Sequence record: KT919972.1
Direction: 5' to 3' (one strand)
DNA: 64,000 bases
Part shown: in pieces, positions 2,887 to 60,392 of the stretch
Position numbering within the stretch: the stretch's first letter is position 1
Layout of the letters: each line of letters starts with the position of its first letter
The notes under the pieces: model-generated
What the model saw: the letters and a program-made list of their open reading frames with translations, nothing else
Databases searched by the model: none
What the model was told of the DNA's origin: nothing
Translations under genes and position numbers: made by a program

Positions 2887-2922
2887 CATAAGTACTCATA
2901 ACAGTATATGAGTGAGACTTAT
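2887..2922 (+). promoter_or_regulatory. RBS-sequestering hairpin with late-promoter-like CATAAGTA in its 5' arm
   Basis: ATAAGT.ACTCATA pairs with TATGAGT..ACTTAT, covering GAGTGAG just before ATG 2924. Confidence 0.55.
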
Positions 2923-2923
2923 C

Positions 2924-3475
2924 ATGGCATTTATGAAAAAAGAGAAAGACACAAAAGACATTACAGAAGCAGATGTACAGTACGCAATTGCCGTACAAAG
3001 CGTATGGATTCACAAGAGATACACAGCGGTTATACCAAACTGTTACACCAAGTTCGATAATGAAGCTGATTTATTTGGTATTCGACCAAGTGGTTTATGT
3101 GATGAGATTGAAATCAAAGTATCTAAAGCAGATTATCGAGTTGACGAGCAGAAAACTGTTCTAATCGAAAATGAGTCTTACGATCACTGGCGTGACAAGT
3201 ATACCAAAACACCAAAACGTGATGCATTGCAAGATGGTAAAATGAGCAATTACTTCTGGTATGCATTCCCGCAAGGTCTTGTAGACCATGCTGATGTACC
3301 TGAGTGGGCTGGTATAATCGAAGTAGATGGTTTTCTCAATGCAAGAGAAGTAAGAATGCCAAAACGTCTACACGGTGGAAAGATGACAATCGAAGAGCAG
3401 TTGAAGCAAATCAAGAAATTGGGCTTTCGATTCTGGAATCTGGTTAAAAAGAACAAGAAGAGCGAAGCGAAATAA
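2924..3475 (+). CDS. PD-(D/E)XK-like (MmcB-type) nuclease-fold protein
   Basis: EADLFG..DEIEIKVSKADY..D..K and NYFWYAFP motifs. Confidence 0.65.
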   Translation: MAFMKKEKDTKDITEADVQYAIAVQSVWIHKRYTAVIPNCYTKFDNEADLFGIRPSGLCDEIEIKVSKADYRVDEQKTVLIENESYDHWRDKYTKTPKRDALQDGKMSNYFWYAFPQGLVDHADVPEWAGIIEVDGFLNAREVRMPKRLHGGKMTIEEQLKQIKKLGFRFWNLVKKNKKSEAK

Positions 3476-3483
3476 CCAACTGA

Positions 3484-3554
3484 GGCCCAAAAATTGGGCA
3501 TCATCTTAGTAGTATTAGTAGTTTTAGTGAAGTTAGAGATATTAGTAATATTAG
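3484..3554. repeat. Hairpin + 6xTTAG (9-bp period) element, copy 1
   Basis: TTAG at 3506, 3515, 3524, 3533, 3542, 3551; near-identical copy at 59620-59689. Confidence 0.9.
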
Positions 3555-3582
3555 GGGATTGAAAAATAACTTGAGAAAGTTG

Positions 3583-3611
3583 TTGACAGTCCCCTTTTTT
3601 GATCGTACTAT
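3583..3611 (+). promoter_or_regulatory. sigma70-type early promoter
   Basis: TTGACA-17-TACTAT. Confidence 0.7.
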
Positions 3612-3645
3612 ACAGTCCTTGAAACAAATTATGTGAGTGAAGACT

Positions 3646-4173
3646 ATGAACTTGAGTGAACGTGAAGAAGAGCTAAAAGCATTAGCTATCGACCATGTGT
3701 ATGATGGTGAAGTTGCTGTCACTATTTCATGTGCTGGTATGAGTGATTACTACACTGTTTGCCCGTCAGAGTTCAAAGACTTTTTGGACAACCATGAGGG
3801 AACAGCTTATGTAGCATTTGAATGGCACAACATGCCATGTGATTTACAAGACGAAGAATTAGACTTCGACGGTCTACTTGCTTGGTTTAATCTCGATGAA
3901 CAAGAACGTGAAATCTGCGAAGCATTGTATAATAACAACGTTTGTATGTCATTCGAAGATGCAGCCGAGAAAATCAGTGACTGTTGGGTGTTCGAAGGCA
4001 CAAGCGAAGACTATGCAAGACATGTAACGTCTGAGCTAATGGGTATTCGCTTAGAAGATATGCCTGTCATTGTAAGCAGCAACATCAACTGGCGTGATGT
4101 ATTCATCGACCTTGACGCAGAAGGTAATATCTACGAAATTGGTCGCGACAAATACTTAACAGTACACGGTTAA
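3646..4173 (+). CDS. ardA: ArdA-like antirestriction (DNA mimic) protein
   Basis: Very acidic 175 aa; SFEDAAE..D..EDYAR..E..EDMP..NINW..DLD..G resembles the ArdA C-terminal domains. Confidence 0.65.
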   Translation: MNLSEREEELKALAIDHVYDGEVAVTISCAGMSDYYTVCPSEFKDFLDNHEGTAYVAFEWHNMPCDLQDEELDFDGLLAWFNLDEQEREICEALYNNNVCMSFEDAAEKISDCWVFEGTSEDYARHVTSELMGIRLEDMPVIVSSNINWRDVFIDLDAEGNIYEIGRDKYLTVHG

Positions 4174-4174
4174 A

Positions 4175-4753
4175 ATGAGTAGCACAAAAGGTAAAGTCAA
4201 CAAAGACGATTACTACGCTACGCCAGACTGGATTGTTGAAGAGTTTCTACTAGAGTTTGAAACTCGCATTCAGCATGAGCACGAGAAGAGCATGGCAGGT
4301 ATGGACGTGCTCGACCCATCATGTGGTGGTTGTTCAGAACACAAAGCAGCATATCCCGTAGCATACAAGAGTTTGTATCATGTTGATATTGACACAATGG
4401 ACATTCGCGAAGACAGTCACGCGCAAATTATCGCGAACTATCTTGAAGCTGATGTTCAAGTGAATTACTACGATATGATCATGACTAACCCACCGTTCAG
4501 CTTATCAGTTGATTTTGCAGAGAAAGCACTGAGCGAAGTCAAGAATGGTGGTTATGTTGTCATGCTACAACGTCTTAACTGGCTAGGTAGTATCAAACGA
4601 AAGCCTTTCTGGGATGAAGCACCCCTGAGAGCAGTGATGGTTCATCATCGAAGACCATCATTTCACGGTACAAAAGGCACAGACTCGATTGAGTATGCGC
4701 ACTTTGTATTTCAAAAAGGTTACGCAGGTAAAGCAGAGATTATAGTAATATGA
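4175..4753 (+). CDS. SAM-dependent amino (N6-adenine/N4-cytosine) DNA methyltransferase
   Basis: DDYYATP, VLDPSCG (motif I), MTNPPF (motif IV). Confidence 0.85.
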   Translation: MSSTKGKVNKDDYYATPDWIVEEFLLEFETRIQHEHEKSMAGMDVLDPSCGGCSEHKAAYPVAYKSLYHVDIDTMDIREDSHAQIIANYLEADVQVNYYDMIMTNPPFSLSVDFAEKALSEVKNGGYVVMLQRLNWLGSIKRKPFWDEAPLRAVMVHHRRPSFHGTKGTDSIEYAHFVFQKGYAGKAEIIVI

Positions 4754-48132: not shown

Positions 48133-48327
48133 ATGAACCAAGTACCAGATTTAATCTTCCATCTAATGAACGACAATGAAATCATCACAATGTGTTTCAT
48201 TGTTGCTCTAACACTCGTGATAATGCACGCAATTACGTTTAGAAATTGCGTTGTGTTATTCTTTTCATCATTTATTCACGGCATCATGACGTTTGTTGCC
48301 TTATTCTATACGCCTATGGGAGGCTAA
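48133..48327 (+). CDS. Small membrane protein
   Basis: AAGGAG RBS; hydrophobic. Confidence 0.65.
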   Translation: MNQVPDLIFHLMNDNEIITMCFIVALTLVIMHAITFRNCVVLFFSSFIHGIMTFVALFYTPMGG

Positions 48328-48328
48328 T

Positions 48329-48598
48329 ATGAGCGCACCTAGTACTGCACATTTCTTCGCTGTTCATGAAGACGGCGAGCGAGAACATTTAGGTTATATT
48401 TTCTGCAACTGTGGTTGGGTCTTCCATGAAGAACACTTCTTGGCTGATCTTGCAGACGACATCGAACACAGCGCGATTCTAAACGGCACTATGAAGAAAG
48501 GTGTTGAGTGGGATTATGTCGAGGCATATGGCATGGTATGGTCAAAAGAAACTGTAATGAGCCATTTACCAGATCTCGCACCAACAAGAGGTGAGTGA
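48329..48598 (+). CDS. Hypothetical protein
   Basis: GGAGG RBS; 89 aa. Confidence 0.7.
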   Translation: MSAPSTAHFFAVHEDGEREHLGYIFCNCGWVFHEEHFLADLADDIEHSAILNGTMKKGVEWDYVEAYGMVWSKETVMSHLPDLAPTRGE

Positions 48599-59190: not shown

Positions 59191-59619
59191 ATGTTAAAGA
59201 AACTGTTGAAAAAAATATTTCCTGATCGTGAATGGAAAGTAGCAGCTTACACAGAACAGAAATCATTCGAAGTGTCTAGTTCATTTACATTTAAAGGAAC
59301 GATCAAATGCCGTGCAGTTGTGTTAGTAGACAAGCATGATAGACGACAGGTCAGAGTCGTATTCGATGAGTACGATTATGGTCGCGAAATATCACCGTAC
59401 AACGAGAATTTGATTAGCAAGATTTTAAAGAACAGCAGTCTTGAATTGATTCGAAGCTCTATAAGTACTCGCAAGCTGAATAGCTATGACGGATTCAATC
59501 TATGCGAACATCATGAAGCATTCTACGATTGGGACACATTCAAAAACGACTTTATCTACGGTGAATTTGATTTGAACGGAAAATCAATCGAGAAGAGCGA
59601 AGCGACAGAAATCGATTAG
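59191..59619 (+). CDS. Hypothetical protein (paralog of 55967-56317)
   Basis: WKV..KCRAVV..D..R. Confidence 0.7.
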   Translation: MLKKLLKKIFPDREWKVAAYTEQKSFEVSSSFTFKGTIKCRAVVLVDKHDRRQVRVVFDEYDYGREISPYNENLISKILKNSSLELIRSSISTRKLNSYDGFNLCEHHEAFYDWDTFKNDFIYGEFDLNGKSIEKSEATEID

Positions 59620-59689
59620 GCGGAAAAATTCCGTCTCATCTTAGTAGTATTAGTGGTTTTAGTGAAGTTAGAGATATTAGGAGTATTAG
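59620..59689. repeat. Hairpin + 6xTTAG (9-bp period) element, copy 2
   Basis: TTAG at 59641, 59650, 59659, 59668, 59677, 59686. Confidence 0.9.
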
Positions 59690-59690
59690 A

Positions 59691-60392
59691 GTGAAGAAAT
59701 CAATTCTCGTGGCAGTTACAGTCGCAGTACTGGCAGGTTGTGGTGAAAGACCACAGCTTGAAACTAAAACTGGTAAAAAATTCACGACTGTAAATGCAGT
59801 TGTGAATAAAAAAGAGCGTGAAATGATCAACTACTGGCTGGCAGATGCTGACGCTAGTAACTATCTGTATAACCCATTGTGGACTGCTCTTGCCACTCGT
59901 AACAAATACGGTTCTAACGCGGTACGACGTTCAGACGATGAAATCCCTTTCTGTGATGTGATTGCATCACTTGTCGAAGCCGAAGAAGGAATTCGCAGTA
60001 CATACGAACGCACGATGAGTAACCAGTGGCGAACGCAGTATGGTATTAGTTTGAGTGAGCAATGTAATTACGATGCTCCTGAATCTCTTGAAGAGAAGGC
60101 AAAACGCATTGAAAAACTTGAAATGCAAGCTGATTTGAACCAACGCGAGAAAAACGCATTGTCAGGCAACATCAACAATATGAATGATGTCCAAGACGCG
60201 ACAATTGAGCTGCTAGACCCGCATGAGTATGACTATCTCATCGAGTCTGCACGCGACTGCAATCGAGCGAAAACAAAACTGCTTGAGTTAACTCAAGTCG
60301 GTAAACCGTTAACTCAAGCTGACGGTTCTGAAGCGCGTAAGTTGATAATCGAGTGTAAAATGCACAAACTTGAAGTTGAATTAAACAAGTGA
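59691..60392 (+). CDS. Putative lipoprotein
   Basis: GTG start; lipobox LAG/C. Confidence 0.7.
   Translation: MKKSILVAVTVAVLAGCGERPQLETKTGKKFTTVNAVVNKKEREMINYWLADADASNYLYNPLWTALATRNKYGSNAVRRSDDEIPFCDVIASLVEAEEGIRSTYERTMSNQWRTQYGISLSEQCNYDAPESLEEKAKRIEKLEMQADLNQREKNALSGNINNMNDVQDATIELLDPHEYDYLIESARDCNRAKTKLLELTQVGKPLTQADGSEARKLIIECKMHKLEVELNK

Follow-up and report, generated by a model that had tools for sequence, protein, structure and literature searches.

The final 64 kb of record KT919972.1 carry two copies of a conserved, non-coding module of about 75-95 bp, in which a small hairpin is followed by six TTAG boxes at exact 9-bp spacing. The record is the genome (248.6 kb) of phi-Grn1, a KVP40-like T4-type myovirus of the genus Schizotequatrovirus, and the stretch analysed here, 64,000 nucleotides long and called the window below, starts at record position 184606; its positions 2900-4200 match phi-Grn1 at 100% identity. 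A sequence-only reading of the window had described two copies; a scan of the whole phi-Grn1 genome revealed exactly six loci, labelled c1 to c6, of which c5 and c6 form the window pair. The feature is real, strongly conserved and clade-wide, and its anatomy is unusual and well defined. The best explanation makes it the conserved core of a cassette, 'terminator - module - early promoter', that has been duplicated and is confined to KVP40-like Vibrio phages. Both the clade-wide six-copy family and the cassettes had escaped the sequence-only reading. As to function, we tentatively favour a protein-nucleated DNA-opening site used in replication initiation.

Anatomy and conservation of the module

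The anatomy was read from alignments (A2-A4), 5' to 3' along the strand of the flanking genes. An optional AGCGAAGCG box is followed after 8-14 nt by hairpin 1 (a 6-bp stem with an AAA loop), then by TCATC and by six TTAG, each with five variable bases. The corresponding features of the window, together with the promoter that follows c5, are listed here.

3461-3469 (+): AGCGAAGCG box of c5, doubling as the last codons (S-E-A) of the open reading frame (ORF) 2912-3475
3485-3499 (+): hairpin 1 of c5, GCCCAA/TTGGGC with AAA loop, extendable to 3481-3503 with one mismatch
3501-3505 (+): invariant TCATC, linking hairpin 1 to box 1 (columns 25-29 in alignment A4)
3506-3554 (+): six-TTAG array of c5, exact 9-bp period
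3583-3611 (+): early-type sigma-70 promoter TTGACA-17-TACTAT, driving ORF 3637-4173 and kept in KVP40, nt-1 and 1.081.O
59596-59604 (+): AGCGAAGCG box of c6, within the last codons of ORF 59191-59619
59620-59634 (+): hairpin 1 of c6, GCGGAA/TTCCGT with AAA loop and G.T closing pair, directly 3' of the TAG stop of the upstream ORF
59641-59689 (+): six-TTAG array of c6, 9-bp period

A pattern scan found the six TTAG of c5 at 3506, 3515, 3524, 3533, 3542 and 3551 and the second array at 59641...59686, exactly as first reported. The hairpin GCCCAA-AAA-TTGGGC is present too, one base to the right of where the sequence-only reading had placed it, and the stem of the second copy (GCGGAA-AAA-TTCCGT) still pairs, as claimed, with a G.T at its base. 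The four-box phased pattern occurs at the two window loci only, with 0 expected from 100 dinucleotide shuffles. Across the 248.6-kb genome no partial or decayed array was found, the maximum elsewhere being three chance in-phase TTAGs.

Among 23 distinct copies there is no insertion or deletion from TCATC onward, except in K566 c3, where a remodelled hairpin is followed by five units. TTAG is present in 126 of the 138 boxes. Exceptions are confined to boxes 3-6 and are all in phase (TTCG seven times, TTTG twice, TTAA and TTCA once each); the twelfth is the absent sixth unit of K566 c3, where promoter sequence follows directly. Boxes 1 and 2, TCATC and the hairpin loop are invariant in 23 of 23 copies, while spacers and flanks drift. 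In 1.081.O c3 all six TTAG and their phase are retained with every spacer different from phi-Grn1 c3, and in K566 some boxes read TTCG or TTCA without any change of phase. An iteron-like array for a multimeric protein, as the sequence-only reading had proposed, fits this retention of boxes and 9-bp phase while spacers change, for which 1.081.O c3 is the clearest case.

The composition of the array is strongly asymmetric. On the sense strand C accounts for 12 of 1029 array bases (1.2%), against 24.5% for G; at the 22 variable columns it occurs 12 times in 462, the spacers being made almost wholly of A, G and T. Ranked by nearest-neighbour energy among all 50-bp segments of the genome, the arrays are within the least stable 0.06-0.5%, that of c5 within the lowest 0.08%. 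Nine of the 16 triplets of the array are TAG or TAA, every third triplet being invariably TAG.

Base-pair covariation was counted on 21 distinct copies. The six pairs of the hairpin 1 core are standard in 18-21 of them. Two adjacent pairs, 11-21 and 12-20, are changed on both sides in four copies, from GC to CG or U.G, including a double compensatory change of CC/GG to GG/CC. The closing pair is G.U (G.T in DNA) in 11 copies and G-C in seven. Folding with DNA parameters favours the sense strand over the antisense strand by 1.0-2.6 kcal/mol, and in F86 the complement barely folds. A recombinant metagenome copy (L141) has a broken stem. There is thus good evidence for hairpin 1 as a conserved single-strand structure. 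It is not overwhelming, because the independent events are few and because gene conversion or quasipalindrome-templated repair could propagate such changes.

The array itself folds in RNAfold into a 22-bp G.U-rich stem, with fold z-scores of only -1 to -4. None of 20 pairs of this stem is changed on both sides, and at four of its spacer pairs pairing is lost in 6-10 of the 21 copies. The array RNA hairpin was therefore rejected as a selected feature; it is a by-product of the self-complementarity of UUAG through G.U pairs. The structured element suggested by the sequence-only reading is therefore supported for the covarying hairpin stem and unsupported for the array.

The box at the 5' end is more variable. 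The exact AGCGAAGCG 9-mer occurs three times in phi-Grn1, each time beside an element (c1, c5 and c6), and c2 and c3 carry one-base variants. Variant forms are AGCGCAGCG, CGCGAAGCG and GCGTCAGCG, and the box is missing from c4 and from c5 of KVP40 and nt-1. It contains the GCGAAGC motif, which forms a very stable DNA mini-hairpin. The metagenome phage contig L142 has two units, some 300 nt from each other (3380-3440 and 3690-3740, both on the minus strand), in which AGCGAAGCGA and CAATTGAAGACC flank a small GC hairpin; a TTAG array follows the first unit only. The second AGCGAAGCGA/CAATTGAAGACC unit, lacking an array, suggests that the box may be an independent repeat unit.

The search of related phages called for by the sequence-only reading returned about 50 KVP40-like Vibrio phages with 4-7 copies each. 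In detail, BLAST with the 85-bp element as query matched 51 phage records, every one a KVP40-group Vibrio phage, and full-length KVP40-like genomes contained 4-7 detectable copies, six in most. The most diverged copy used as query gave 50 records, again all from this group. The element is also carried by nt-1, which belongs to a second genus, Mylasvirus. A 25-base core pattern matched in IMG/VR only KVP40 and VH7D (six copies each) and three metagenome contigs, and had no match in 185,579 bacterial and archaeal species genomes, which argues against a host-derived repeat of the REP or MITE type. A loose five-box pattern matched in IMG/VR only unrelated coding tandem repeats of giant viruses. 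The restriction of every BLAST match to KVP40-group Vibrio phages and the absence from bacterial and archaeal genomes indicate that the element is phage-specific and old. In Rfam 15 the element has no match, the sole hit being a chance one outside it to a mammalian long non-coding RNA model (E=5.8). The repeat sequence was not found in this context in the searchable literature, an earlier mention in the original KVP40 genome paper being possible. As far as we searched the literature and Rfam, the element is undescribed.

Cassettes, neighbouring genes and evolution of the copies

The six phi-Grn1 copies, all co-oriented with their flanking genes, are given below with record position and strand, what lies upstream, the promoter that follows the array, and the downstream gene.

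c1: ~48.2 kb (-); terminator with GC-rich stem, tetraloop and 6-7 T; TTTAGA-17-TATAAT, 23 bp from the array; dNMP kinase
c2: 74.6 kb (+); intrinsic terminator; TTTAAT-17-TATTAT, 13 bp from the array; wac
c3: 101.4 kb (-); intrinsic terminator; TTTAAG-17-TATACT, 2 bp from the array; uvsY
c4: 143.4 kb (+); intrinsic terminator; TTTAAT-17-TATAAT, 0 bp from the array; glutaredoxin
c5: 188.1 kb (+), in the window; no terminator (phi-Grn1, KVP40, nt-1); TTGACA-17-TACTAT, 28 bp from the array; protein of unknown function
c6: 244.2 kb (+), in the window; neither terminator nor promoter; array abutting a Shine-Dalgarno sequence and GTG; lipoprotein

The promoters that follow the module carry T4-like early -35 elements. 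That of c5 had been missed by the sequence-only reading, which saw no promoter that would explain the element. In KVP40 and 1.081.O the -35 of the c3 promoter is TTTACA, and the gap between array and promoter differs between c3 orthologs (2 bp in phi-Grn1 versus 11 bp in 1.081.O). Inside the element no promoter was detected by scan or by eye, and for c6 neither promoter nor terminator was found within 59400-59900. A MotA-type middle promoter downstream was ruled out, the 19-bp spacing from TGTTTA to the -10 being a misfit for a Mot box. Upstream of c5, the ORF stops in or just before the module in phi-Grn1, KVP40 and nt-1, while 1.081.O c5 has a terminator. A further terminator at 2848-2877, upstream of ORF 2912-3475, has a stem with a TTCG loop and then the T-run-GTATCT tail of the c1 cassette, and lacks the TTAG module, which makes the module an optional insert in such cassettes.

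The early-type promoter of c2 is conserved, K566 included, and wac has its own TATAAATA late promoter. The conservation of an early-type promoter before a late gene suggests a role other than gene expression. Directly after the array, K566 c2 has a perfect T4-type late promoter TATAAATA (L148:5868-5875), where phi-Grn1 c2 (L003:24637-24645) and KVP40 carry TATTAAATA, with one base extra. A second, perfect TATAAATA follows about 70 nt onward, before wac, in K566, phi-Grn1 and KVP40.

UvsY (Pfam PF11056, E=3.6e-50) is the product of the gene at record 100930-101343 (-), which is labelled 'single stranded DNA-binding protein', and c3 is located 2 bp upstream of the promoter of this gene. c5 is one gene away from dam. 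In c6 the spacer of box 5, GGAGTA, supplies the GGAG Shine-Dalgarno (59680-59683) of the lipoprotein gene 59691-60392, which has a GTG start and an LPAM_1 signal at E=0.002, just below the Pfam cutoff. KVP40 has the same arrangement with an ATG start codon. Pfam and PHROGs searches of the neighbouring proteins for candidate binders gave nothing useful and no replication-initiator domain.

Upstream ORFs 2912-3475 and 59191-59619 extend into the repeat, with the AGCGAAGCG box among their last codons, and end within the repeat or just behind it. Their proteins are unrelated (BLASTP E=9.8), yet both end in K-S-E-A, a shared tail that results from reading the box as codons. Read in the TTA frame, the array gives a hydrophobic peptide, and in both window copies this frame is in phase with the stop codon that ends the upstream ORF. 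Such a peptide, or a stop read-through, was rejected, since the copies share no start codon, the two upstream proteins have nothing in common beyond their tail, and other copies have in-frame stops (TGA in phi-Grn1 c2, TAA in F86). Substitutions across copies show no third-codon-position bias, and no tRNA gene, suppressor or other, was found in the window. GenBank records contain short 'hypothetical proteins' over the element (L145:395-514 in 6E35.1a; L148:5746-5919 and L149:7547-7699 in K566), one of them a leucine/valine-rich 39-mer with a TTG start. Those of 6E35.1a and K566 are probably artefacts, produced by gene calling along a TTA frame free of stops, and as a consequence for annotation such entries across the element in several GenBank records are probably spurious.

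The copies have been both inherited and exchanged. The c1 and c4 promoters of phi-Grn1 share their spacer sequence, which indicates that the whole cassette was duplicated, and orthologs keep copy-specific traits such as the TTTG last box of c4 in phi-Grn1 and KVP40. c1 (L002 ~48226-48330) and c5 (window 3477-3560) of phi-Grn1, 140 kb apart and on opposite strands, differ at one of 70 positions, whereas c5 differs from its KVP40 ortholog at seven, which points to recent gene conversion between dispersed copies. K566 c1 and c2 have identical TTCG units. In nt-1-type phages the similarity to phi-Grn1 starts exactly at hairpin 1; the module is thus also a synteny breakpoint.

A candidate DNA-opening site and its alternatives

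Invariant 4-bp boxes, a 9-bp phase, free spacers, a fixed number of units and a conserved 5' end (hairpin loop, TCATC, boxes 1 and 2) fit a cooperative binder nucleated at one end. G.T(U)-tolerant covariation, near-absence of C on one strand and extreme instability suggest that a single sense strand is recognised or exposed, rather than a symmetric duplex site. Since c1-c4, and c5 in 1.081.O, lie between a terminator and a promoter and are largely shielded from transcription, single-stranded DNA is favoured over RNA. We therefore tentatively propose that the sense strand would form the small hairpin and that hairpin, TCATC and the first two TTAG would nucleate a sequence-specific protein, probably phage-encoded. 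This protein would then fill the remaining boxes cooperatively, with one protomer or dimer per 9 nt. The easily melted 50-bp segment would open beside the active early promoter, and the opened region would be an entry point for replication initiation or priming. Protein binding, DNA opening and an outcome in replication initiation rather than in transcription control are the parts of this scheme that we infer. Its logic would be the 'promoter plus unwinding element' of T4 origins, yet with one sequence common to all six sites.

In T4 at least five dispersed origins are active, all dependent on a promoter together with an AT-rich unwinding element; one of them, oriF, overlaps the uvsY promoter (PMC3016281). 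T4 oriA is annotated at the dam/56 junction. The positions of c3 at uvsY/oriF and of c5 near dam/oriA give modest weight to an origin. In a stronger version, which we hold to be unlikely, the six sites would be sequence-identical origins, unlike those of T4, and a dedicated initiator would read the sense-strand hairpin and polymerise on single-stranded TTAG, 9 nt per unit, in a TAG register like that of DnaA-trios. If true, it would give the T4 superfamily an origin motif with its initiator system, the first to be defined there.

Several observations weigh against an origin. To our knowledge no initiator protein is known for the KVP40-like clade. The promoter that a T4-type origin requires in cis is present in c1-c5, 0-28 bp after the array, but c6 lacks one, and its array abuts a ribosome-binding site. 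The unstable array is upstream of the promoter, which fires away from it, whereas the unwinding element of T4 oriF and oriG is downstream; the short downstream leaders of the module are not AT-rich tracts. The exact match to a T4 origin concerns one of six positions (c3/uvsY) and was compared after the fact. T4 origins have no common sequence motif (PMC3016281), and neither a TTAG array nor the hairpin was found in T4 oriF, nor any homology of the element to the oriF or oriE sequence. GC-skew inflections are lacking at the six sites, the skew tracking gene strand. Finally, the events behind the hairpin covariation are few and could have been spread by conversion or repair. The upstream array, the lack of a shared motif or hairpin in T4 origins, the single post hoc positional match, the promoterless c6 and the silent skew are the reasons why we hold the origin proposal to be tentative.

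Transcription offers two other explanations. A phage or host DNA-binding protein could coat the double-stranded array and turn the promoter on or off at a set time, or block polymerase that has passed the upstream terminator, making the module an upstream control or insulator element of six early promoters. We regard this as possible but doubtful. In c1-c5 an early-type promoter of the same orientation directly follows the array, and in c3 and c4 the -35 region is in contact with the last box. Paralogy of the c1 and c4 promoters implies that module and promoter were duplicated together, and cooperative operator arrays, ParG tetramer boxes and omega heptads among them, typically consist of short boxes at a sub-helical period. 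However, the distance from array to -35 is 0, 2, 13, 23 or 28 bp in paralogs and 2 versus 11 bp in c3 orthologs, so that there is no fixed geometry, and c6 has no promoter at all. The downstream genes (dNMP kinase, wac, uvsY, glutaredoxin and a protein of unknown function) form no obvious common class, and a double-stranded operator leaves the G.T-bearing hairpin covariation and the near-absent C on one strand unexplained. Those two traits are accommodated if the module acts as RNA in read-through or intercistronic transcripts, where G.U pairs are tolerated; it would be a processing or stability site (for example for RNase E entry), a platform for an RNA-binding protein or, in c6, a translational control. 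The co-orientation of the six copies with flanking genes and the recurrence of an RNase E RN|WUU-type motif in the array agree with such a role. Moreover, phi-Grn1 c5 and c6, lacking an upstream terminator, must be transcribed together with the upstream ORF, and the array stops 1-5 nt short of a start codon in c6, where it contains the Shine-Dalgarno, and in two metagenome copies. Four of the six phi-Grn1 copies and 1.081.O c5 are nevertheless located between terminator and promoter and would hence be absent from most transcripts, and these shielded copies are as conserved as c5 and c6. The long array hairpin has no compensatory pair, and 6-10 of the 21 copies lose its spacer pairs. Rfam contains no matching family, and the fold z-scores (-1 to -4) are largely due to the self-complementarity of TTAG via G.U. 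An RNA element is, on this evidence, rather unlikely.

A neutral or selfish repeat would be a passenger of PeSL-like cassettes, homogenised by gene conversion and at most a substrate for recombinational shuffling. Conversion is indeed visible (c1/c5 in phi-Grn1, the TTCG units of c1/c2 in K566), in nt-1-type phages the synteny break falls exactly on the module, upstream ORFs extend into the AGCGAAGCG box, and PeSL cassettes are shuffling points in nt-1 and KVP40 (PMC4122927). This explanation is nonetheless improbable: the six positions are syntenic in at least two genera, boxes 1 and 2, TCATC and the loop stay invariant in 23 distinct copies while spacers and flanks drift, and the phi-Grn1 genome contains no decayed or partial copy. 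T4-type phages recombine at high rates, so that six direct repeats of 75 bp put the genome at risk of deletions; that the repeats are retained all the same argues for selection. It is more improbable by far that the boxes are target sites of 7-deazaguanine DNA modification by DpdA2, the invariant G of TTAG being exchanged for preQ1-type bases. Pathway and element occur in the same clade, and a complete preQ0/preQ1 gene cluster is located at record 178.5-183.3 kb, just upstream of the window. phi-Grn1 DNA contains 816 dPreQ1 and 35 mdPreQ1 per million nucleotides (PMC10516641 Table 1). In nt-1 DNA three derivatives reach 232, 72 and 44 per million, and the target motif of DpdA2 is unknown (PMC10516641; PMC6884629). 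But 816 per million corresponds to about 400 sites per genome, ten times the 36 box guanines, and the minor species to about 17 per genome, a numerical closeness that proves nothing. Nothing ties the enzyme to TTAG, the motifs reported for other DpdA proteins being GA or GGC.

The choice of origins in T4-type phages is a long-standing open question, for which the opening site that we favour would provide one sharply defined module, in six copies and clade-wide, in large marine and aquaculture vibriophages. Even as promoter or RNA control, the module would point to an unknown sequence-specific protein and to a new class of genome punctuation.

Comparison with known systems

Like T4 oriF and oriG, the modules are dispersed, promoter-linked and contain an easily melted AT-rich segment of about 50 bp, with c3 in the uvsY promoter region. 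In T4, however, a MotA-dependent middle promoter precedes the unwinding element, for which no particular sequence is required, whereas the array of the module is upstream of an early-type promoter and highly sequence-specific. The T4 oriE repeats, put forward as an analogue in the sequence-only reading, resemble the module in being direct repeats close to a phage origin, in a genome of the T4 type, for which protein binding has been proposed; their role is undefined (PMC3016281). In Tandem Repeats Finder these 'iterons' correspond to T4 record 79426-79557 (L152:4927-5058), about 70-200 bp from the annotated oriE point. The analogy is weak, because the T4 repeats have a 24/48-nt period within the coding sequence of gene 5, at one locus, and the module is non-coding, with a 9-bp period, at six loci. 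A better positional link to T4 origins than oriE is given by c3, which lies at the uvsY promoter just as T4 oriF does.

The PeSL and PmSL cassettes of T4-like phages are repeated intergenic units in which a terminator is followed by a sigma-70-type early promoter, located at synteny breakpoints, and c1-c4 fit this description. Terminator, sigma-70-like early promoter, Shine-Dalgarno and start are all present in c1-c4; c5 lacks the terminator, and c6 both terminator and promoter. PeSLs are defined by a stem-loop, a 'generally AT-rich region' and a promoter, and the nt-1 stem-loop consensus is A3-4G3-loop-C3T3-4 (PMC4122927). The published definition includes no box, covarying hairpin, TCATC or phased TTAG, and the nt-1 PeSL stem-loop consensus differs from the module.

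Among repeat arrays, iteron origins also have tandem direct repeats beside an AT-rich region, with cooperative binding expected. The iterons of plasmids and lambdoid phages are 17-22 bp long, about two helical turns, at one locus and with the cognate rep gene adjacent. The module, unlike these, has 4-bp boxes at 9-bp spacing, six loci and no identified initiator gene; an iteron-type origin was rejected given its 9-bp units with a 4-bp core and neighbours without a replication-initiator domain. By box and period the closest formal analogue is the array bound by ribbon-helix-helix proteins (ParG tetramer boxes, omega heptads), in which 5-10 contiguous units of very short boxes and short free spacers at a sub-helical period imply cooperative coating. 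These arrays belong to plasmid partition and operator regions and have neither a hairpin nor a strand-asymmetric composition, and no ribbon-helix-helix gene is linked to the element.

Like the module, REP/BIME repeats and T7 RNase III sites recur between genes in a common orientation and place a hairpin at gene ends. REPs, however, are host elements in hundreds of copies, and no bacterial genome searched has the module. T7 RNase III sites are structurally conserved double-stranded RNA hairpins, whereas the long hairpin of the module is unsupported. The DnaA-trios of bacterial oriC, formally the nearest analogue of the triplet register, are a 5'-TAG/TAA-3' register on one strand beside a GC-rich segment, recognised as single strand on opening. 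The array has a similar one-strand register of TAG/TAA triplets; it differs in having no adjacent DnaA box, in the interruption of the trios every 9 nt, and in that no AAA+ initiator is implicated.

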